Source: Rebecca billardiae RCC1528
Lineage: Eukaryota; Protista; Haptophyta
Direction of reading: 5' to 3'
NCBI GenBank assembly: GCA_965240325.2
Contig: OZ251255.1
Span: 248,001-312,000 of the forward strand
Length of the DNA: 64,000 nucleotides
Below the pieces are notes generated by a model that was not told the DNA's origin, ran no database searches, and saw only the letters and a program-made list of their open reading frames with translations. Both the position numbers and the translations under genes were made by a program. Numbering within the stretch: position 1 is the stretch's first letter; each line of letters opens with the position of its first letter. Positions 2,606-40,789 of the stretch are shown in pieces.

Positions 2606-3327
2606 TGTTGAGCTGACGCAGCCTGGGGCGCGCATCTCAGCAGATGGCGTCGCCGCTGGGACGTCAGGGCCGGCGCCGCACCAGGCGGGCCGGCGGCATC
2701 AGCTACGCAGTGGCTGGCTCTGGCGGCGCGCGCGCGCGGCGCGCGCGGCGGCAGGAGCGCGAGCGCAGCAGCGCTGGCGCGGAGCGACGTGGACGCGGAG
2801 CGCGGACGCGGCAGCGCGGACGCGGAGCGACACGGACGCGGCGCGTGCGCGGGCGGTACGGCCCGGCGCAGCGCGGCACGGATGGCACGCCGGCGGCACA
2901 GGCGGGCGCCATCGTGGAAGAGTCCAAGGAACAACGGACTCGATCACTTCATTCATGGACGCCCGGATTCTCAGTTTTGAGAATCGAGAATCCGGGATCA
3001 TGGGTCCGTGCGCAGCTTACCCAGGTCCGATGACATTACCGAGTACCTGGGGGAAAGATGAGCTTACGGCGGTGCGTCGGTAACGCCTGCGATTGGCGGA
3101 CGCACGGAAGCGGGGCTCAGGAAGGTTACAAGATTCCCGAGCCGGGCCGCAAAACGCCGTGTCACCCTGCGCAACCGAAAGTTGGTTGCGGCAGGAGGAT
3201 TAGCTTCGCTCGTCAGAGGAGCGAGGGTCGAGATTGCCTTCGTGGGCGTCACCGACGACGCGCCCGAGGACGTGCCGGTGAGCTCTTAGCAGGGCTCGAG
3301 ACGCTCGGAGCTCGCGTTTACCCAATA
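2606..3327 (+). repeat. Copia-A 5' LTR (TGTTG...CAATA)
   Basis: Direct repeat of 9287-10008, apparently identical (the ORF-track peptides match). Confidence 0.96.
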
Positions 3328-5948
3328 TGCATGCAGCGATCGGGAGGGATCGTACGCGCGGCGCTTTCTCATCGATCGCGCCGATGGGCACGAGCGGCCG
3401 GATGCACGGCTCGGTCGACGTGGGGATGCTCAACGACAAGGGCAATCAGCAGCGCTGGCTCGCGCAATCGGCGAGCAGGCTGGCGGCGCTTCCGGCGGGG
3501 CAAGGTGCTACGATGTCCGCACTGAACGGCATCATCGTGACGCACGGCCCGAACGCGGAGCACCGCATCAACACGCTCGAGGAGTACAACTCGACGTGGG
3601 CAACTTTCAACCCATCCGCGGCGAAGATGATCAAGGTCAGTGCCGAGCGGATGGACCTGGCGCGTGAGAACTACGCGCTGCAGCAGCGGCTGCTCGACCA
3701 TCGCCACGAGCACGAGCGCCGCGAGCACGCCGAGCGCCGGGCCGCGGCGGAACGCGCGGCGGCGGCGGCGGCGGGGGCGAGGCAGGCGCCAAGCTACGCG
3801 CAGGCTGCCTCGGCGGGCGCGGGGAGTGGTTTAGCCACTCCGGGTGGCCCGACGGCGACCGGACCGGGTTCAGGTCCGGCGGCGGGCGGCGGATCCGGAA
3901 TTTCTCCGGGTCCGGCGGCCGGCACACCCAGTCCGGGTGTGGGCACAGGCGGCGCTGCAGATGCGCCGGCTGGGACTGACGGCGCGACGCCTGCGGGCGG
4001 CGCCGGCGTCGGCGCGGCGCCTACGGGCGGCGCCGGCGGGATCGGTGGCGCGGCGCCCGCGGGCGGCGCTGCCGTGACGCTCGATCCGCGCGCGCGCGAG
4101 CTCTACCGCCGCGAGCGCGAGACCGAGGAACAGATGTATGAGCGGCAGGCGAGCGAGCACGCCATGCTGGACATAAAGCTCCGACAGAGCGTGTTGGAGG
4201 CAGCGCCGGACGGCGACGAGGCGGACCCCGCCAAGTACGCCGGGGCGCAGTACGAGAAAGGGACGGCTTTCTTACGCACCGAGCTGCGGTCGTGGGTGAC
4301 GGAGGCTGCGTGGCAGCACATCAACCGCCTCATGGAGACGCAGCCGGAGGTGCAGGAGGAGCGCGCGCGCCGGGGCGCACTTACGCCGGGGCGCGAGTTT
4401 CTGTACCTGTGGAAGACGATCCTGCGCATGCGCAAGCCCGACGACATGCGGAAGTACATGTCGGTGCGGGCACGCTGGCACCGGACGGTCCTGCCGGATT
4501 GCGGCAAGGACGGCGTCGGCGCCCTCGAGCTCTTCCAGGTGCTACAGCACAACCACGTGCTGCTGCAGGAGCTGAGTGACGCAGCGCCAGCGGCGGAGAT
4601 GCTTGCGCGGCTCATCGAGTTCATTCCGTCGGTGGGCGCGGGCATCGAGATGCGGACGCGGTACGAGTCGAAGGACTACAGGACCGTGACGAACTTCGAC
4701 GTGCAGGAGCTCGTGCACGAGCTCAACGGCAAGTTCGAGGACTGGGACTTCTCCAAGGGCAAGCGGGTTGACCGCGGCGGCCCTGGGCGCCCAGGGGCGG
4801 GTGGCCGCACGCCAGGAGGCGGCGGCGCTACCCGCGCGCACCCAATCGACGGGCTCCGCCTGGCGCAGGCGGCGGCGGCGTCGGCGGGTGGCGGCGGCGG
4901 CGACACGACGTCGCCGGCTGGCCGTGGTGGCGGCGGCGGAGGTCGTGGCGGTGGCGGCGGCGGCACTGGCCGCGGCGCCGGCCGCGGAGGCCAGGACGAC
5001 TCCGACGACGCGCACGGGCCGCGCTGCTACAAGTGCGGCGCCGTGGGGCATATCAAGCGTTACTGCCCGCAGGTGACACAGGCTGATCGCGACTCGAACG
5101 CTGGCGATGACGCGGCGTCGACGCGGTCGGATCGCAGCCGTGGCTCACATCGGAGCGGCGGTGGCGGTGGCGGCGGCGGTGGCGGGGGCAGCACCCGCGC
5201 CGTGGTCGGTAATGGCAACGGCGGCGGCACGGTCCGCACGCAGGTCGCGTTCGCTCCCGAGCAGGGGGACGAGCCCGACGGCGCCGTTGGTGGCGACGGT
5301 GACGCTGACGCCGGAGACGGCGGCGGCGGCGGCGCCGGACTCGGCTTGGCGCCTATTGGCGCGGCTATCGGTGGCAGGGCGCAGCGCGACGAGGACATCG
5401 AGATCGTCGCGGCGCGGGCGGCCGAGGCACGCGTGGCGCCGCCGGAGGACAACACGCGGGCGTTGGTGTTTGACACTGGCGCACGGAAGAACATCGCCAT
5501 GGCCGAGGATTTGACGAATCTTACCCCGGTGGACGGCGCATGTCAGATCGAGTGGGGGAACGGTGCGCGGGAGCGGGTCACTCACCGCGGGACCCTGGTG
5601 GTCAAGCTTGCGGCGGACGACGACAGCGACAAGGTCCTCACGCTCGAGATCGAGGCGTGGGCGTCGCGGCGCGTCACGGCGCCGCTGCTGTCGGTCGAGC
5701 ACTGCGCGGACGCAGGCATCGAGTTCCACTACTCGCAGCGCGGCAACACTGCGGACTTTACGGCGCTGGGAGGCGGCGTCGTGCAGCTGCCGCGCGATTC
5801 CACGCTGCGCGCCGAGATTGTACGGCGCCAGGTGGGGCCGGACGTCGGCGATGCGCCGGCGGAGCAGCGCGCACGGCGCAGGGCGCCAGTGCGGCGCGTG
5901 GGCGCGGGGCGGGGGCGCGTTGGCGCTGCGCCGCCCCCAAACGCCTAA
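3327..5948 (+). CDS. gag: Copia-A ORF1: Gag plus aspartic protease
   Basis: Zinc knuckle CYKCGAVGHIKRYC (~5025-5066); protease LVFDTGA (~5463-5483) followed by the IEWGNG...VTHRGTL pattern and PLLSV; true start could be a downstream ATG. Confidence 0.92.
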   Translation: MHAAIGRDRTRGAFSSIAPMGTSGRMHGSVDVGMLNDKGNQQRWLAQSASRLAALPAGQGATMSALNGIIVTHGPNAEHRINTLEEYNSTWATFNPSAAKMIKVSAERMDLARENYALQQRLLDHRHEHERREHAERRAAAERAAAAAAGARQAPSYAQAASAGAGSGLATPGGPTATGPGSGPAAGGGSGISPGPAAGTPSPGVGTGGAADAPAGTDGATPAGGAGVGAAPTGGAGGIGGAAPAGGAAVTLDPRARELYRRERETEEQMYERQASEHAMLDIKLRQSVLEAAPDGDEADPAKYAGAQYEKGTAFLRTELRSWVTEAAWQHINRLMETQPEVQEERARRGALTPGREFLYLWKTILRMRKPDDMRKYMSVRARWHRTVLPDCGKDGVGALELFQVLQHNHVLLQELSDAAPAAEMLARLIEFIPSVGAGIEMRTRYESKDYRTVTNFDVQELVHELNGKFEDWDFSKGKRVDRGGPGRPGAGGRTPGGGGATRAHPIDGLRLAQAAAASAGGGGGDTTSPAGRGGGGGGRGGGGGGTGRGAGRGGQDDSDDAHGPRCYKCGAVGHIKRYCPQVTQADRDSNAGDDAASTRSDRSRGSHRSGGGGGGGGGGGSTRAVVGNGNGGGTVRTQVAFAPEQGDEPDGAVGGDGDADAGDGGGGGAGLGLAPIGAAIGGRAQRDEDIEIVAARAAEARVAPPEDNTRALVFDTGARKNIAMAEDLTNLTPVDGACQIEWGNGARERVTHRGTLVVKLAADDDSDKVLTLEIEAWASRRVTAPLLSVEHCADAGIEFHYSQRGNTADFTALGGGVVQLPRDSTLRAEIVRRQVGPDVGDAPAEQRARRRAPVRRVGAGRGRVGAAPPPNA

Positions 5949-8900
5949 GCCCGGAACCCGCGCAGGTGCGAGCCACAAACACAACCACTACGGTATCTGA
6001 TACCACTACTACTACGGAGGCGGCGCGAGGCGCTGATCCGGCGTGGTTACGCACTTGGTCGGTTCGAACGGGCACCAATGACCAACGTCTACTCGAGCGC
6101 ACGCGACGCGTGGCCGAGGGGATGGAGGGGGCGAACGCGCGGCGTGAGCCGCTTGACGAGCAGTCGGCGGCGGGCATGACGCGGCGGTCGTTCGCGGACG
6201 CGATGCCGACGGCGCACTACCCTGGGCAGGTGACGCACGTCGACATCTTCTCTATGGCGCGCATCGACTTACCAGTTGGGGCCGATGGCGCACGTGGAGG
6301 GTATCCTCATGGGATCATATTCATCGATGGGCATTCACGTCGATGGCAAGTGTACGCGCTACGCAGCTTGGATGACGCCGAGGTTGGTCGGGCATTCCGC
6401 TGGTACGCGCAGTTGCTTGGAACAGGGGCCATGCACATGTCGCATTGGGTCCTGGCGTCGGGGTGTACTATGGCGCGACGTCATATTCACACCGACGGTG
6501 GCTCGACGTTACTGAGTACGTACGTCGAGGGTGAGCTGGCGAAGCTTGGGTTCTCGTCGACGGTCACGTCGGCGCCCGACTCGCCGAGCTCGAATGGCGT
6601 GGCGGAACGCGCTATCCGCACGCTGAAGTCGAGACTGCGCGCCACGGTCGTTGCGCGTGGAGTCTCGAGGGTCGATTGGCACTACGCGGCGTGGCACGCA
6701 TGCGCGTCGCGCAATCGACTGGCGTCACGTGGTATCGTTCGTGACGATGGAGACATTGAGTGGCTCACGCCGGATGAGCTGTTCTTTGGCAAACGTCCGA
6801 CGTGGAAGCATCACGTGGCGTTTGGCGCGCGCTGCCGCGTGCTGATGCTGGGCGCACGGCGCAATGCATTGGGGCAGCTGAAGCAGCGCGCACTACCCGG
6901 ACGTGTCTATCTCTGGGGTGGGCACGGCGTGCAGTGGCGCGGTACATGGCGCTACGTGCTTGGGTACGTATGTCGTTTAGACGACGGACGTCTCGTTCAC
7001 TCACGTGACGTACGCATCGACGAGACCGACCTGGTCGAGGGGGGGCACTCGTCGCTTGGCGCACCTGACGGTGGCGCGTACGTGGGTGATGGTGACGGCG
7101 CCGCGGTAAGCGGCGGACATCGTCCAGTCGGCGGTGACGCCGACGGTGAGGACGAGGACGGCGATGGCGGCGAGACGCCAGCCGACGCCGGGAATGACGA
7201 CGCGACAGAGTTCGACGTCGGGTACGACGACGACGCAGATGCGTCAACGTCGGGGCGCGGGCGCAGCAGCGTGGACGCGGGACAACGCGGGTGCAGCAGC
7301 GCGGGCGCACAGCCGTCGACGCCGACGCCGCAGGGCGGGCGTGGCGGGGCAGGCGCGTCGATGACGCAGCCGGGTCGGCAGGATCAGATACCGCCGACGG
7401 AATCACGGCGCGGGGCCGCAGCAGATGCTGGCGGGCCGCCGCGCGGCGCAGACGGTGACGACGGCGTGATCGAGGACGCGCCGCCGCCCGGCCTGGATAT
7501 GGGACACGATCCGCTTCGCAGGGATCGGACGTCGCGCCGACGGCCGCAGCTGCTTACTGCCGTCGTCAGCGCCGCGTCGGTGTTCCAGAAGATCAACGTG
7601 AAGGTGCCGACGAACTATCGCGAGGCGATGCGGTCGGCGGAGGCGCCCCAGTGGCAGGGCGCCATGCTCGAGCACTTGGAAGGTCACAAGTTGCTCGGCA
7701 CCTCGGAGGAGGTGGTGGTTCCGGAGGGCACGCGGGTGTTGCCGAGCCAGTGGGTCTTTGACGTGAAGTCGAACCCGGAGGGCGAGGTGACGCGCTTCAA
7801 GGCGCGGTCGGTGCTACTGGGGAACCTACAGCGGCCGGGGATCGACTTTCAGGAGGTCTTTGCTCCGACGATCCGGCCGGAACAAGTGCGACTACTCGTG
7901 GCGATCGCCGCTCAGCAGGCGGGCGCGAGAGTCGACTTGGGTGCAGCGTCGGTTGCGGCGCTGGGCATACTGTCGAAGGGCGACGTCAAGGACGCGTACC
8001 TCAACTCGGAGTTGAAGCCGGATGAGCGGCCTCTCTTCTCATTCCCGCCGGGCTACGTGCCGAGCACGCAGGCGCCGCCGGGGCACAAAGTCGTGGGCCG
8101 GAGCCTGAAGGCGTATCCGGGCCTACGCCAGTCTGGGCGCGCGTGGCATCGCACGCACCGCACCCAGCTGCTCGCGCGCGGCTTCTCGGAGTGTCCGAGT
8201 GCGCCGTGCATCTACGTCAAGGAGTCGGCGCCGGGCGAGTTCATCATCGCGGGCGGCTTTGTCGACGACTTGCTGTTTCTCAACCTGACGCGCGACGCGC
8301 GCGCGGTGGAGAAGCTGGCGGCTGACCTGAAGGAGCATTACGAGATCAAGCTGAGTGAGCGGCTCGATAAGTTCCTGGGCGCCGTGTTTGAAGTTCATGA
8401 CGACGGCATCCTGATGCACCTGGGGCCGTACGTCGAGAGCGTGCTTCAGCGGTTCGGTTTGAACGCGAGCACGCCGGCGCGCACGCCGGAGCCGGCGGCG
8501 CGGACGCAGCTGAGCGACGACGATGAGGCGTTGCTGCAGCGCGCGGAGATTGAGAACTACCAGGCGATGGTGGGATGTCTCATGTTTGCGATGGTCACGG
8601 CGCGGCCGGACATCGCGCACGCGGTGAACATGCTGACGCGACGCATGTCATGTCCGCGGGCGGTGGATCTGGTAAGTGCGAAGCGCGTGCTGCGCTACTT
8701 ACGTGGATGCCCGCGATTGGGAATCTTGTTCAAGTTTGCGACAGATTCCGAGCACCCCGACCTACTTGCTTTCGCTGACTCCGATTGGGCAAGCAATCCG
8801 GTGGAGACCAAGGGCAGGTCAACGGGTGGATACATTGTGTTCTACAATGGGGCGCCGGTGTCGTGGCACAGCGGGCTGCAAGGTACAGTCTCGCTGAGCT

Positions 8901-9250
8901 CGACGGAGGCGGAGTACGTCGCGCTGAGCGATTGCTGCCGCGAGGTGAGCTACTTGCGGAGCATACTCGAGTCCATGCGGCAGCCGCCGCGGGCCGCGAC
9001 GGAGGTGCGAGAGGACAACAAGGGGGCTATCGACCTCGTGGAGAATCCTGTGCACCACAAGCGCTCGAAGCACATCGAGATCAAGCATCACTATGTGCGT
9101 GACGCGCAGGAGGGTGGCAAGGTGAAGGTGGTCAAGGTACACACCTCACTCAACCACTCTGACATCATGACGAAGGCGACGGACGGTGCGACGTTCAAGC
9201 GGCACGTCGACGCCATCATGGTGGACCGACACCCGACGCGCGCGCGGTAA
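5936..9250 (+). CDS. pol: Copia-A ORF2 (-1 frame): integrase, reverse transcriptase, RNase H
   Basis: IN THVD / HTDGG / NGVAER; RT SQWVFDVK...RFKAR, GIDFQEVFAP, DVKDAYLN, YPGLRQSGRAW, FVDD; RNase H ADSDWA, SSTEAEY, EDNKGA, KHIEIKHH. Start placed at the slippery site by inference. Confidence 0.93.
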   Translation, partial: PKRLSPEPAQVRATNTTTTVSDTTTTTEAARGADPAWLRTWSVRTGTNDQRLLERTRRVAEGMEGANARREPLDEQSAAGMTRRSFADAMPTAHYPGQVTHVDIFSMARIDLPVGADGARGGYPHGIIFIDGHSRRWQVYALRSLDDAEVGRAFRWYAQLLGTGAMHMSHWVLASGCTMARRHIHTDGGSTLLSTYVEGELAKLGFSSTVTSAPDSPSSNGVAERAIRTLKSRLRATVVARGVSRVDWHYAAWHACASRNRLASRGIVRDDGDIEWLTPDELFFGKRPTWKHHVAFGARCRVLMLGARRNALGQLKQRALPGRVYLWGGHGVQWRGTWRYVLGYVCRLDDGRLVHSRDVRIDETDLVEGGHSSLGAPDGGAYVGDGDGAAVSGGHRPVGGDADGEDEDGDGGETPADAGNDDATEFDVGYDDDADASTSGRGRSSVDAGQRGCSSAGAQPSTPTPQGGRGGAGASMTQPGRQDQIPPTESRRGAAADAGGPPRGADGDDGVIEDAPPPGLDMGHDPLRRDRTSRRRPQLLTAVVSAASVFQKINVKVPTNYREAMRSAEAPQWQGAMLEHLEGHKLLGTSEEVVVPEGTRVLPSQWVFDVKSNPEGEVTRFKARSVLLGNLQRPGIDFQEVFAPTIRPEQVRLLVAIAAQQAGARVDLGAASVAALGILSKGDVKDAYLNSELKPDERPLFSFPPGYVPSTQAPPGHKVVGRSLKAYPGLRQSGRAWHRTHRTQLLARGFSECPSAPCIYVKESAPGEFIIAGGFVDDLLFLNLTRDARAVEKLAADLKEHYEIKLSERLDKFLGAVFEVHDDGILMHLGPYVESVLQRFGLNASTPARTPEPAARTQLSDDDEALLQRAEIENYQAMVGCLMFAMVTARPDIAHAVNMLTRRMSCPRAVDLVSAKRVLRYLRGCPRLGILFKFATDSEHPDLLAFADSDWASNPVETKGRSTGGYIVFYNGAPVSWHSGLQGTVSLSSTEAEYVALSDCCREVSYLRSILESMRQPPRAATEVREDNKGAIDLVENPVHHKRSKHIEIKHHYVRDAQEGGKVKVVKVHTSLNHSDIMTKATDGATFKRHVDAIMVDRHPTRAR

Positions 9251-9286
9251 GCGGCGCAGCTCGCGGCTATGGCTGTCGAGGGGGGG

Positions 9287-10008
9287 TGTTGAGCTGACGC
9301 AGCCTGGGGCGCGCATCTCAGCAGATGGCGTCGCCGCTGGGACGTCAGGGCCGGCGCCGCACCAGGCGGGCCGGCGGCATCAGCTACGCAGTGGCTGGCT
9401 CTGGCGGCGCGCGCGCGCGGCGCGCGCGGCGGCAGGAGCGCGAGCGCAGCAGCGCTGGCGCGGAGCGACGTGGACGCGGAGCGCGGACGCGGCAGCGCGG
9501 ACGCGGAGCGACACGGACGCGGCGCGTGCGCGGGCGGTACGGCCCGGCGCAGCGCGGCACGGATGGCACGCCGGCGGCACAGGCGGGCGCCATCGTGGAA
9601 GAGTCCAAGGAACAACGGACTCGATCACTTCATTCATGGACGCCCGGATTCTCAGTTTTGAGAATCGAGAATCCGGGATCATGGGTCCGTGCGCAGCTTA
9701 CCCAGGTCCGATGACATTACCGAGTACCTGGGGGAAAGATGAGCTTACGGCGGTGCGTCGGTAACGCCTGCGATTGGCGGACGCACGGAAGCGGGGCTCA
9801 GGAAGGTTACAAGATTCCCGAGCCGGGCCGCAAAACGCCGTGTCACCCTGCGCAACCGAAAGTTGGTTGCGGCAGGAGGATTAGCTTCGCTCGTCAGAGG
9901 AGCGAGGGTCGAGATTGCCTTCGTGGGCGTCACCGACGACGCGCCCGAGGACGTGCCGGTGAGCTCTTAGCAGGGCTCGAGACGCTCGGAGCTCGCGTTT
10001 ACCCAATA
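9287..10008 (+). repeat. Copia-A 3' LTR
   Basis: Follows the polypurine tract; ends CCCAATA then TSD GTGAC. Confidence 0.96.
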
Positions 10009-13000
10009 GTGACATATAGACCATGTCGACCTCACTTTGTTAGAGCATCTCAGCGAGATCGTTCTGAGTCCCCAGCAGGCAGCAGGTCCCAACATGCGAT
10101 ATAGGCTGTGTACTGGCAGGCTGTCAAATATGTAGTTTCCTAGAAGCCACTGGTCGTTACATACCCACTGTGTATATAGGCGCCATGCTGATGAATACAG
10201 CCTCATCTGATCTCGAGCTGCGAGATACGTTTTCAGACTGTGTATACGGCCACGCGTACGGCGTATTGCAGACATATTAGACCCAAAGCACCGGCCCCAC
10301 GTCCTCAGCCCGGGAGTGCTCTCGGTCATAGTCAAGGTTTAAAGTCACTCGAGCCAACCGTCACCGCTCCCTGGCCGAGACCTACGAGGCAGGTCAAATC
10401 TGTCGTCGTCGCAGTGCGGCACAGTGCCGAGCATGCGATTCGGCAGCAAACGTCTGCTCCAGGCGGTGGCTGGCGTGTCTGCACCAAACCAGGCTGGATG
10501 GGATTGGTCCACATAGGTACGCACTACCCTGTTCCGCGCTAGTTCCGGGCTTAGGGGCGGATATTCGGCCTACAGAGGCTGATCCGGCGCTGTTCGGCGC
10601 TCCTGGCTGGCTGCGCGGAGCCCAACGTCAAGCGCCGGCGTGTGCAAGGTGTCAAGATTGAGACGGTCTCTGACGCTCCCGCCGGTCTTGGGCGCACCAG
10701 GGTGCATGAGGGCCCATCTGCATCTGCTTCTGCAGGCATGAGCGTCACAGGGGCGCGCTTGCAGGCACGGTCGAGTGCACGTCGGACCTGTCGAATGAGC
10801 CAACCGCTGCCTGCGAGCACGTCCGCGACGTCCTGAGAGGCGAATGGGAGGCGCCCAGACGCCATCAGAGGGCACATGTGACCCATACCCAACGTACTGA
10901 CCATCGCAAGTGCCACGGCAGGTGCAAACACGGGCCCTACAAGCGGAACATGACAGTTGCGAGCTCCGCGGAGGTGCTGTGCGCGAGCTCGCGCCGGTCT
11001 GCTGACGGCGATTCCGGCGCAGTAGGGCAGGTTAGGCGAGCTGGGCATTCACAGACATATATGGACGATTGGTCCGAGCATCGATCTCATTGGTCCGAGT
11101 TGATCGTGCGCCACACCGTGCGGTAGCGTAGCGGGCGTACGCAGCGCACCAATTCAAGCCGGCCGACGCGCGCCGCGCACGGCGCGAGGTGGCCAAGAAG
11201 CGGGTGGTGAGCCGCTGGTGGCGCAAAGGCACGGGTCAGTAGCGCCCACCAGCGTCACGCGCGCGCGCACCCGAGACCATCTCGGCGTCTCAGAGGTCGC
11301 GAGCGCGCGGCGGTCCACTGCCTCCGGCCGCTCGTCTGGAGCGGAACCGAGCTCTGAGCGCCCGAAGGCGTCGGAGCTCGATTTTCGAGCGAGGTCCGAG
11401 AAAAAGGCTCCGCGCCACCCTAAAAGGCCGAGGGCGGAGCGAAAATGCGACGCGACTTTGCTTTTCATTTTTAAATGGGCGGTTTGGCCCCCCTAACTCA
11501 AGTACCCGGTGCCGCTGTGCCACCCGGCGCGGGCGCCGGGCCCGCGGCGGGGCGGCCGGGGCCGCGCGGGGCTACCGCCCGGCCCGGTGCGCGGCCCGGA
11601 CACGGACCGTACACTCGGTGAGTCGGCAGAGGGCACTGGCCCCGGGTCGCGGGCCCCGGACTGACCGGCATGTGTCCAACCCGCGGATTCCCAGTGCAGG
11701 GGGAACGACCTGGTAAGCCGAGGCGAGCAGACTGTCGGGCCGACTGGCACGGTACGACCGTCGGCGCCGCGGCTCAGGAGTGATGATAACTCATTTAAAT
11801 CTGCGTCGGACAGTAGAGTGCGCGCTGCTGCCGGACTATATATATATATATATATATATGCCGTCGTATATATGCGCCGCCGTCGCGGTCGTCATATAAT
11901 TCCGCCAGCCGCCGCAGGTCCCGGTGGCCGCGGGGCGTCCGGCGCAGCCAGTGCGCGCGCTGCGCGGCGGTCTGCGCGGCGCGCGGTCCGCCCCCGCCCG
12001 GGCCGGCCCGCCGCCGCCGGACCCGGTATACTCTCTGAGTCCGCACTTCCGCGCGCCGCGACTGCGGGGGCCGGCCGGTTACCCGTGCCGCGGGACCGGA
12101 CGACATCTCGGATATAGCAGCTAGCGCACTTATAGCTACTATATATATATATAACTACTTATACCGCCGTCCGCCGATCATCAGCATCAGATCTGAGGCG
12201 CGCGCGCGTCAGCAGACGCGACCGGCGGAAGCAGACTCGTTATTGCAGCCGCCGCCGAGTCGCCGAGTGCGTCGGCAGCAGGCCCGGCCCCGCGCGCGCG
12301 GCCCGTCGGACGAGTCCGGGCCGCCGGAGTCCGGGCGGACCGTCTGCCGGCGCGGCGTCGCGGCAGCCGAGAGTCCGCCCGGGGGCCGGCGGTCCGTCAC
12401 GATCCGGTCTTATTCGTGCGTCGTGTATAATTATTATTCGCGATTAGTCCGATCGACTCCTGACGCATGCGGCTCCCATGCGCCACGGTACTCGGTATGA
12501 GTGCTGTGCGCGCTCTGGCGGCGCGGGGCGGGTCCCGCCGGGCCGCGGTCCCCGTCGTCAACTCACGTCTGGCACGGCGCCGCGCTCGGCCCGTCAGTAC
12601 TCGGGCCTGGCCCGCCAGCGCGCCTTGGGGCTGGGCGGTCTGGTCGTTGGTGGACAGGTGCTGATCAGTGGGGGCGGGCGGAATGTCTGAAACAATAGCC
12701 GACTGGCGTCGTCGTCGGCGTCGTCGTCGTCGGGCGGGCCGGCGAGGGAGGGCTGCGAACGGCGACCGCGCGTGCTCACGCGCACGGTCGAGCGGTCGCC
12801 GCGGGCCCCTCGGCGCCGCCGTCTGCCCGTCGAGCCAGCCAGCCGTCGGGGCGGGCGCCGGTGCCACGCGGGCACGCGCGAGCCGAGCGGGCGCTGCCGG
12901 GGGAGCGGCGGTGGCGGGTGCCGGCTGCATACTGCGGCCGCCGCGCCCGCGCCGGCACGCGTCCCTCGGTGGCGCGGGCGCGGGCGCGGCGCTGGCGCGC

Positions 13001-38316: not shown

Positions 38317-40789
38317 ATGGCGCTCGCCCTGCGGCGCACGGCGGCGCACCCGTCGGCCGCGCTCCTCGCGCGCCGATGCCTCTCGTTCTCCCCGGCCGAC
38401 CTGGACCAGTACAGGGGGAAGGTCGCCGCCGACCTCTCGGGCATGTCCGCCGAGCAGCGCGCGTCGCTCGACGCGGCCGCCAAGCTCGTCGAGTACGACC
38501 CGGCGGTCTCGAGCTATTCGGCGGTGACGTACCCGAAGCCGGTGGCGGCGAACGCGGCGGCGAACGTGAAGCAGGCGTACACCGACTGCATGGTCGCCGA
38601 GGCCGCGTGGGTCGACGAGAAGCTCTCCGCCGCCAAGGCGCACCTCGATTCGCTCGTCGCATCCAAGGCTGGCGCGGTGCGCGCGCGCCGCGCCGCCGCC
38701 GCCGCGCGCGCGAGCGAGCGAGCGAGCGAGCGAGCGGGGCGAGGCGGGCCGGGTGGGGAGGTGAGGGTTGGATTGCACGCTGCGGGGCGGGGCGGGCCGA
38801 TGGGGGCGGGCCGGCGGCACGGCAGCTCCGCTGACGACAGCTGTGGCGCAGTTCCAACCCGCCGCCCGCGCGGCACGCGCCGCCCTCGCTCCGGCGGGGG
38901 CGGCGCGCTGCGGCGCGGGCGGCGGTGCGCGGACGCGAGCTCTGCCGATGCGTGCCGGGCGGCGCTCCGCCCGGGAATCTTCTCTCCGAGGGGCGCCTGG
39001 GCCCGCCGCCACCGCCGCCACCGCCGCCACGGGGGTGGGCTCGGAGCCCGCGGCCGGCCGCCGTGTCGGCAGCTGCTGCGACGATGCGCGGTCGCTCGCG
39101 CCGCGCCGCGCCGCGGCGGCGGGCTGGCGCCGCGCACGCCGCCGCCGCTGCGGCACGGGCCGCCGGGCAGGCGGCGTGGCGGCGCGTGGCGCAGTGCCAC
39201 CCGCCCGTCCGCCCGTGGGGACGCCCTCCGCGTGCCGTTGCGTCGGGGAGGGCGGGGGCCAAGACAGGCGGTTCAGATCAGGGGGTCAGTCAGCCGTGGG
39301 GCCGCGCGCGTGGTGGGTGCGCGGGGCGGGGGCGGCGCAGCACCCGTGCCGCGGGGCGGGGGTGGCGCAGCACCCGTGCACAGCGCAGGAGCCTGGCGGT
39401 GGGGCGGGAGGCCTCGCGGGCGGAGGCTGCGCGGCGCAGCCGCGCAGCGCGCCGCGCACGGCGCCGCGCCCGCGCACGACGCGCTGACGCGCTCAGCCCG
39501 CTCGCCGCGCGCGCCGCCCTCTGGCGCCGCCTCTGGTGCCGCGCGCTCCGCCGCGCCGCGCGCTCCGCCGCGCGCCGCTCCGCTCGGCGCGCAGGGCGCG
39601 TCTGAGGTGGACAAGCGGCTGCTCTCGTTCAAGGACGCGGAGTGCGCGCAGGTGCGTGCGTACATCTCGCAGCTCACCCACGACGCCGGCCTCGCCGCCG
39701 CCGCCGACGCCTCGCGCTGGAAGGCGCCCGTTACTGTGGCGGTTACGGGCGCCGCCGGCGCGATCGGGTACCAACTCCTCTTCAAGATCGCGTCCGGTGC
39801 GATGCTCGGGCCGGACCAGCCCGTCGTGCTGCACCTGCTCGACCTGCCCGACGCGTCAGACAAGGTGCGCCGCCGCGCGAGGAGCCGCGGGGCGACCACA
39901 CCCGGCACGGCCGCTGCGGCGCACGGCCCGCGCGGCGCGGCGGCGCGCGGCGACGCAGCTGCCGCCGGCAGCTGTCAGCTGCGTGGTGCGCGTCAGGCGG
40001 GACGGCGGTGTCCTCGTGCGCTCCCGCGCGCGCCGTGCGCCTCGCGTCGCTCGCTGTGCCCCCGACCCTCACCCGCCCCCCCCACCCGCCCCGTCACCCG
40101 CGTCGGCGGCCGCGCTGCCCCCGTGGCGCTGCGCGGCTGCGGCGGCGCGCTCTGATTGGGCGGCGGCTCTGCGTGCCGCGCTCTGATTGGGCGGCAGGTG
40201 ACTGGCGTGATGATGGAGCTGCAGGACTGCTCCTTCCCGCTGCTCGCGGGCGCGCACGGCTTCTCCGACCCGAGCGCCGGCCTCGCCGGCGTCGACTACG
40301 CCATGCTCGTCGGCGCCAGCCCCCGCACCAAGGGCATGGAGCGCAAGGATTTAATTGCCAAGAATGCCGAGATCTTTTCCGCGCAGGGCAAGGCGCTCAA
40401 CTCGGGCTCGCCGGGGGCCAAGGTGGTGGTCGTGGGCAACCCGGCGAACACGAACTGCCTGATCGGCATGATGAACGCGCCGGACATGCCCGCGGAGAAC
40501 TGGACGGCGCTCACCCGCCTCGACCAGGTGTGTGTGCGTGCGCGTGTGTGTGCGTGTGTGTGCGTGTGTGCGCGTGTGCGCGCGTGTGCGCGCGTGTGTG
40601 CGCGTGCGTGCGCGTGTGCGCGCGTGTGCGCGCGTGTGTGCGCGTGTGCGCGCGTGTGTGCGCGTGCGTGCGCGCGCGTGCGTGTGTGTGCGTGTGTGTG
40701 CGTGTGTGTGCGTGCGTGCGCGCGTGTGCGCGCGTGTGCGTAGGCGCGCGTGCGCGCGTGCGTGTGTGTGTGTGTGTGTGCGTGCGTGT

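Follow-up and report, generated by a model that had tools for sequence, protein, structure and literature searches.

The stretch analyzed here, called the window below, consists of 64,000 nucleotides (nt) of forward-strand DNA from the haptophyte Rebecca billardiae RCC1528 (assembly GCA_965240325.2, contig OZ251255.1, positions 248,001 to 312,000), with a G+C content of 71.5%. Positions 2606 to 10008 of the window are an intact, recently inserted long terminal repeat (LTR) retrotransposon of the Ty1/copia superfamily (Pseudoviridae), all features of which lie on the plus strand. The 5′ LTR (2606 to 3327; 722 bp with TG...TA termini) matches the 3′ LTR (9287 to 10008; 722 bp) exactly, at 100% identity, and a 5-bp target-site duplication, GTGAC, flanks the element at 2601 to 2605 and at 10009 to 10013. 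The original prediction, which proposed a programmed −1 frameshift between the protease and the integrase of this element, had described the LTRs as identical and the duplication as intact, and both are. No obvious primer-binding site was found directly 3′ of the 5′ LTR (3327 to 3360), and the window has no tRNA genes. The interior of the element is divided between two reading frames. Open reading frame 1 (ORF1; 3327 to 5948) specifies Gag, nucleocapsid (NC), and protease (PR), an assignment that draws on the profile of G+C content at third codon positions (GC3). It has 873 codons counted from the first ATG; this ATG (3327) overlaps the final base of the 5′ LTR, and the real Gag start probably lies downstream of it. 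A second frame, −1 relative to ORF1, is open from 5474 to 9250. Read from 5936, it comprises a linker, integrase (IN), reverse transcriptase (RT), and RNase H (RH), for a total of 1104 codons plus the stop. The domain order, Gag-PR followed by IN-RT-RH, is copia-type, with integrase ahead of reverse transcriptase.

We assigned domains within the two frames by motif, profile, and predicted structure. A Pfam scan of ORF1 gave a CCHC zinc knuckle of Gag/NC (5025 to 5066; PF00098; E = 1.2e-4) as its sole match and did not recognize the protease. We place the protease domain at 5421 to 5828, where a DTGA motif (5472 to 5483) and a PLLSV motif (5682 to 5696) are found. An AlphaFold2 model of this region, with eight homologues as input, had a predicted local distance difference test score (pLDDT) of 74. 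When the model was searched with Foldseek, the protease of xenotropic murine leukemia virus-related virus (XMRV) ranked first (E = 8e-4; probability, 1.00), followed by those of feline immunodeficiency virus (FIV), Mason-Pfizer monkey virus (M-PMV), human immunodeficiency virus (HIV), and Rous sarcoma virus (RSV); Ddi1 was also among the best matches of the predicted fold. Weak matches to PF22936, the copia Pol beta-barrel, were found in 4 of 9 relatives, and a profile of the protease alignment found no relevant match among Protein Data Bank (PDB) sequences. Together, the DTGA motif and the predicted retropepsin-like fold, which best matches retroviral proteases, indicate that ORF1 encodes a protease, as had been proposed. 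In the −1 frame, a conserved motif, WLRTWSVRTG (6044 to 6073), stands at the place expected for the HHCC motif of the integrase N terminus. The integrase catalytic core (6233 to 6613) follows, with its two aspartates in THVDIF and HTDGG and its glutamate in NGVAERA; these residues, D103, D187, and E224, fall in alignment columns that are invariant across the clade of relatives described below. Reverse transcriptase (7712 to 8488) matches the RVT_2 family (PF07727; E = 2.7e-33, above the curated cutoff) and includes FVDD at 8258 to 8269. SDIMTK (9158 to 9175) corresponds to the ADxxTK-type motif described for the end of copia RNase H (PMC5445492).

The 3′ end of ORF1 reads CCG CCC CCA AAC GCC TAA. 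The heptamer C_CCA_AAC (5936 to 5942) fits the X_XXY_YYZ form of slippery sites in the phase of ORF1, one codon ahead of the stop; the stop codon, TAA (5946 to 5948), is within the 6-nt spacer at 5943 to 5948. The predicted phasing of the heptamer was confirmed, and ORF1 (871 in-phase positions) contains no other canonical heptamer, whatever the phase. From 5936, the −1 frame translates as PKRLSPEPAQV... and stays open to 9250, so the predicted passage through PKRLSPEP into the IN-RT-RH frame was also upheld. GC3 is high in the ORF1 frame to about position 5880 and in the −1 frame from about position 6060, and G+C content at second codon positions (GC2) is correspondingly low. Because of this pattern, we read the 400-nt overlap upstream of the heptamer as ORF1 coding sequence, with the switch of frame at the stop. 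Substitutions point the same way: most of the changes that separate the window copy from six copies of a slightly diverged subfamily are silent when the upstream part is read in the ORF1 frame and the downstream part in the −1 frame (example counts, 19 synonymous and 8 nonsynonymous versus 4 and 23). The subfamilies diverge by only about 1%, and their differences within the overlap at 5540 to 5935 are too few to inform.

We propose that the polyprotein is split past the protease. Most ribosomes would make Gag-NC-protease and end at the TAA. A minority would slip one base back on C_CCA_AAC, with the peptidyl-tRNA shifting from CCA to CCC and the aminoacyl-tRNA from AAC to AAA, and would read on through integrase, reverse transcriptase, and RNase H to give a fusion of about 1970 residues. 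The outcome would be a high ratio of Gag-PR to IN-RT-RH, like that of RSV. We infer the slip and its efficiency from this arrangement; a stem that starts 6 nt past the heptamer may serve as the stimulator.

The genome has about 39 copies of the family, in most of which the ORF2 region has an open frame of 1248 to 1258 codons. Heptamer, spacer, and stop are identical in 30 of 30 aligned copies; all 30 have the two-frame arrangement, and none has a continuous ORF. The sole length variant nearby is an in-frame deletion of 30 nt (5981 to 6010) that marks a subfamily. We also examined a Logan contig, a k-mer assembly of a public sequencing run, which spans 5330 to 6005 with four substitutions and zero indels. 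These data bear on the chance that the frame break is an assembly artifact. One additional C would fuse the two frames, and a C6 run undercalled as C5 in every copy could thereby disguise an element that really has a single ORF. The k-mer assembly shows the same sequence, and the same −1 arrangement, at sites that lack long homopolymers, is found in a second family of the same genome (family B) and in roughly a dozen separately sampled metagenome assemblies. We consider an artifact of this kind next to impossible.

The aligned copies are equally relevant to a short intron that would remove the ORF1 stop and change the frame, with Pol made from the spliced mRNA. GT...AG pairs of fitting length exist, from a GT at 5898 or 5919 to an AG at 5965 (68 or 47 nt, both 2 modulo 3), and copia-type elements do use splicing to balance Gag and Pol (PMC5580714). 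These candidate introns are, however, very short, with weak donor sites, and spliced Pol RNA would yield copies that lack the intron, whereas 0 of 30 copies lack the segment.

A further group of loci in the genome also resembles the element. It is a nonautonomous derivative of about 4.3 kb, found at about 25 places (for example, L055 at G000:C18:366900-375100 and L056 at G000:C27:405500-413700, which are 99% identical). Its LTR-like ends are 77 to 86% similar to the LTR of the window element, and it contains a 319-codon ORF and tandem repeats of fragments of window positions 6945 to 7475 (integrase C terminus and linker). This derivative is probably mobilized in trans by the window family.

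Protein searches with the −1 frame product identified relatives of 35 to 57% identity, all of about 950 to 1250 residues and consisting of ORF2 only. Contigs with these ORF2 relatives were retrieved, and the resulting set of 15 lineages consists of the window family, family B of the same genome, and metagenome relatives (54 to 62% G+C). Family B (L036; G000:C5:14500-24499 and six other places) has 7 copies and is 45% identical in integrase. All 15 lineages encode IN-RT-RH in a frame that is −1 to the upstream ORF, and 14 of the 15 have an in-phase XXXAAAZ heptamer 0 to 27 nt ahead of the ORF1 stop. The heptamer is GGGAAAC in seven lineages (L036, L034, L045, L040, L044, L048, and L053), GGGAAAG in L031 and L032, GGGAAAT in L054, AAAAAAC in L046, L047, and L049, and CCCAAAC in the window. 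The 7886 in-phase positions include 19 canonical heptamers; 15 of these fall among the 165 positions no more than 30 nt from the stop, and 4 fall among the remaining 7721. The sites vary in sequence and in distance to the stop, and the sequence on either side of them is unconserved. A shift could be productive only within an interval of 37 to 52 nt in L032, L040, and L054, and the heptamer is inside that interval. Splicing and decay are disfavored because differing, phased heptamers have been kept in 14 of 15 lineages; with the identical cassette in 30 of 30 genomic copies, this upholds the earlier view that decay is unlikely. An intron, in particular, would leave unexplained why phased XXXAAAZ sites precede the stop amid unconserved flanks, and we regard it as highly improbable.

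In 8 of the 15 lineages, the conserved W-x3-W-x2-R-x-G motif at the integrase N terminus is preceded by no ATG in the −1 frame and is therefore reachable only from ORF1. This argues against the view that ORF2 is expressed by internal or non-AUG initiation or by reinitiation, with the heptamer incidental, for which the −1 frame of the window does offer an ATG at 5540. The overlap from 5540 to 5880 nevertheless codes in the ORF1 frame and not in the −1 frame, as judged by GC3. The same view has a second form, in which the frame break is a fixed defect of a nonautonomous family. The derivative family described above suggests that mobilization in trans occurs in this genome, but the arrangement has been kept, with intact ORFs, across a clade whose members share 35 to 57% identity. 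In either form we consider this explanation very unlikely.

The heptamers also bear on transcriptional slippage, by which a base would be added to some transcripts within the C5A3 run. The window site sits in CCCCCAAAC, and four lineages (L035, L046, L047, and L049) have A6 runs. Most lineages, though, have GGGAAAC, in which the runs are just 3 plus 3, too short for efficient polymerase slippage. The features that are conserved, codon phase and the X_XXY_YYZ form, are ribosomal in kind. To polymerase slippage as the source of the fusion we accordingly give scarcely any credence.

The region downstream of the heptamer was folded as a possible stimulator of ribosomal frameshifting. Over 5949 to 6073 (125 nt), a long-range stem-loop is predicted, with a closing stem of GCCCGGAACC paired to GGUUCGAACGGGC that starts 6 nt past the heptamer (−57.5 kcal/mol; z = −2.6 versus dinucleotide shuffles); it is retained in the subfamily with the 30-nt deletion. 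Its 3′ arm lies where the conserved R-x-G of integrase is encoded. A fold of 5936 to 6060, which had appeared unstructured, was set aside, as that range excluded the 3′ arm, and was replaced by the full-range fold. A scan of 5800 to 6200 against Rfam by E value gave no match. Among the relatives, 8 of 13 lineages have a much more stable fold in the 60 nt past the heptamer than at control positions of the same element (0 to 20 of 300 controls as good), and the stems begin 5 to 8 nt past the heptamer. The window, L031, L032, L034, L045, and family B have a common layout of heptamer, N6-7, and GCCCG; in the window, L031, L032, and family B, the partner, CGGGC or GGGC, is within the integrase R-x-G codons. 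Between L031 and L032, the stem-loop differs by three compensatory pairs. In family B, whose cassette reads G_GGA_AAC GAG TAG, the structure that follows is highly stable (−69.5 kcal/mol across 110 nt; z = −4.0).

Several observations weigh against a programmed −1 site at this position. The enrichment of heptamers near the ORF1 stop, itself a point in favor, has an odds ratio of 193 (Fisher P = 1.2e-22), but the lineages are related, so this P value overstates their independence. Within the clade, the window is alone in having the CCC form of the heptamer. L042 has the −1 arrangement without a canonical heptamer, its ORF1 stop being enclosed by a strong 13-bp GC hairpin (L042:2600-2700), and one copy, L035, has an extra frame break. 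The downstream structure is a weak point in the window family itself. Compared with 300 positions of the same element, the region past the heptamer folds at −9.8 kcal/mol versus a mean of −22.6 kcal/mol over 60 nt and at −52.8 versus −58.1 kcal/mol over 130 nt. Where the original prediction had suggested folding for a stimulatory hairpin or pseudoknot, a stem was indeed found, but it did not prove exceptional: the 125-nt stem-loop stands out from shuffled sequences only and is unremarkable next to same-element controls. Given that comparison, we claim no stimulator for the window family.

L035 resembled a +1 arrangement. In L047, a close relative, A_AAA_AAC and the GC hairpin recur in a clean −1 arrangement, and the L035 sequence is therefore probably best read as a copy carrying an extra frame break.

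Taking the points on both sides together, we think it very probable, with the comparison of lineages as the decisive evidence, that C_CCA_AAC is a functional programmed −1 frameshift site. The RSV-like plan originally put forward, with Gag-PR as one product and an extension into IN-RT-RH as the other, is likewise supported by the predicted protease in ORF1, the switch of frame at its stop, and the heptamer conserved in 14 of 15 lineages.

The protease motif is in the upstream ORF in 13 of the 15 lineages, the exceptions being L031 and L054 (a truncated contig). L031 (1-651) keeps G_GGA_AAG, the stop, and the stem, and the last 216 residues of its upstream ORF have no protease motif and are coiled-coil-like; this element may lack a protease or be rearranged. 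In five lineages (L036, L042, L045, L040, and L049), the glycine of the protease triplet is replaced (DSAA, DTQA, DTRA, or DSQA versus DT/SGA); the window has the canonical DTGA. A replaced active-site glycine is unusual for active retropepsins.

We inferred a tree of RT-RH (quick IQ-TREE run, midpoint root only) in which the two-ORF lineages cluster, with support in the Shimodaira-Hasegawa-like approximate likelihood ratio test (SH-aLRT) of 97 for 15 rows and 99 for 18 rows. The larger set adds P0039, P0041, and P0042, in which inspection confirmed the same cassette. The nearest outgroups are two single-ORF copia families of the same genome. One of these, L051, encodes 2138 residues, with CCHC, Pol_BBD, and RVT_2 matches above threshold and a weak, subthreshold match to gag_pre-integrs (E = 0.007). 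The simplest reading of the tree is that the ORF split arose once, from a single-ORF ancestor. The clade is also set apart by its integrase. At window positions 6044 to 6200 and in the clade alignment, every member has 0 of the 4 HHCC zinc ligands of the integrase N terminus, and the homologous stretch reads W-x3-W-x2-R-x-G ... LDE-SAA-M-R-SF. The N-terminal domain retains a copia-like scaffold (LW..R.G....LL ... R..F), and the D,D,E core is intact. Loss of the HHCC ligands is a peculiarity of this lineage and gives no grounds for excluding it from Ty1/copia. We lean toward the view that these elements form an undescribed, monophyletic copia clade of marine protists (haptophyte-like hosts), in which the PR/IN −1 frameshift and the zinc-ligand-free integrase N terminus would be shared innovations and some members would use the R-x-G codons to form the 3′ arm of the stimulatory stem. 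Elsewhere in the window, at 38317 to 39723, is a malate dehydrogenase gene whose best named relative is from Diacronema lutheri, a haptophyte of the Pavlovales (61% identity, with a quarter of the query aligned).

Alpharetroviruses (RSV and avian leukosis virus) have the protease in the gag frame and a −1 shift near the end of that frame, and they make abundant Gag-PR and a rare fusion. The window element is alike in that, as deduced here from its sequence, the protease is in the gag frame and a single −1 shift of the X_XXY_YYZ type would give the remaining pol enzymes (retroviral −1 shifts are reviewed in PMC5009743). It is unlike them in being a copia-type element without env, in having IN-RT-RH and not RT-RH-IN, and in using XXXAAAZ and not A_AAU_UUA. 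The likeness is convergent, since the two are related no more closely than LTR retroelements are in general. The −1 shifts that are common in Ty3/gypsy and BEL elements (gypsy, 17.6, and others) occur at the gag/pol boundary (Gao et al. 2003, as summarized in PMC5009743); these are different superfamilies from that of the window element, and their shift is ahead of the protease.

Within its own superfamily, the window element shares with Ty1, Ty2, and Ty4 of Saccharomyces the order PR-IN-RT-RH and two overlapping ORFs joined by frameshifting (PMC5009743). However, Ty1 shifts +1 on CUU_AGG_C by a hungry-codon mechanism ahead of the protease, separating Gag from PR-IN-RT-RH, whereas the shift proposed here is −1, by tandem slippage, and past the protease. 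The CoDi copia elements of diatoms are likewise found in marine protists, and some have a stop or frameshift between ORF1 and ORF2 (PMC2806351). Their PR, IN, RT, and RH are nevertheless all in ORF2, the break is ahead of the protease, and that study describes no slippery site past the protease (PMC2806351). The strategies documented for copia elements are +1 frameshifting (Ty1, Ty2, and Ty4), readthrough (Tca2), a single ORF with splicing (copia, EVD, and BARE1), and degradation of Pol (Ty5) (PMC5580714, PMC5009743). Single-ORF copia elements, Tca2, and Ty5 belong to the same superfamily and must likewise make Gag in excess of Pol (PMC5580714), but they rely on RNA processing, stop suppression, or proteolysis in place of the −1 frameshifting proposed for the window element. 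A full-text literature search, in which the survey of Gao et al. (2003) was covered via secondary summaries only, found no copia element with a −1 shift past the protease.

Retroelements need far more Gag than Pol, and −1 slippage past the protease would be a new solution to this need for the copia superfamily. The protease would then be made in the same amounts as Gag, in a clean convergence with alpharetroviruses. If part of the clade does build its stimulatory stem arm from the integrase R-x-G codons, constraints on protein and RNA would be coupled there. The clade would also provide a natural allelic series of heptamers (CCC, GGG, or AAA, then AAA, then C, G, or U), spacers, and stems from which to learn the rules of frameshifting in little-studied eukaryotes, and the window element, which is young, has about 39 copies, and retains identical LTRs, is a convenient candidate for experimental work. 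Annotation that does not model the shift would wrongly call elements of this clade broken or split them into two genes.

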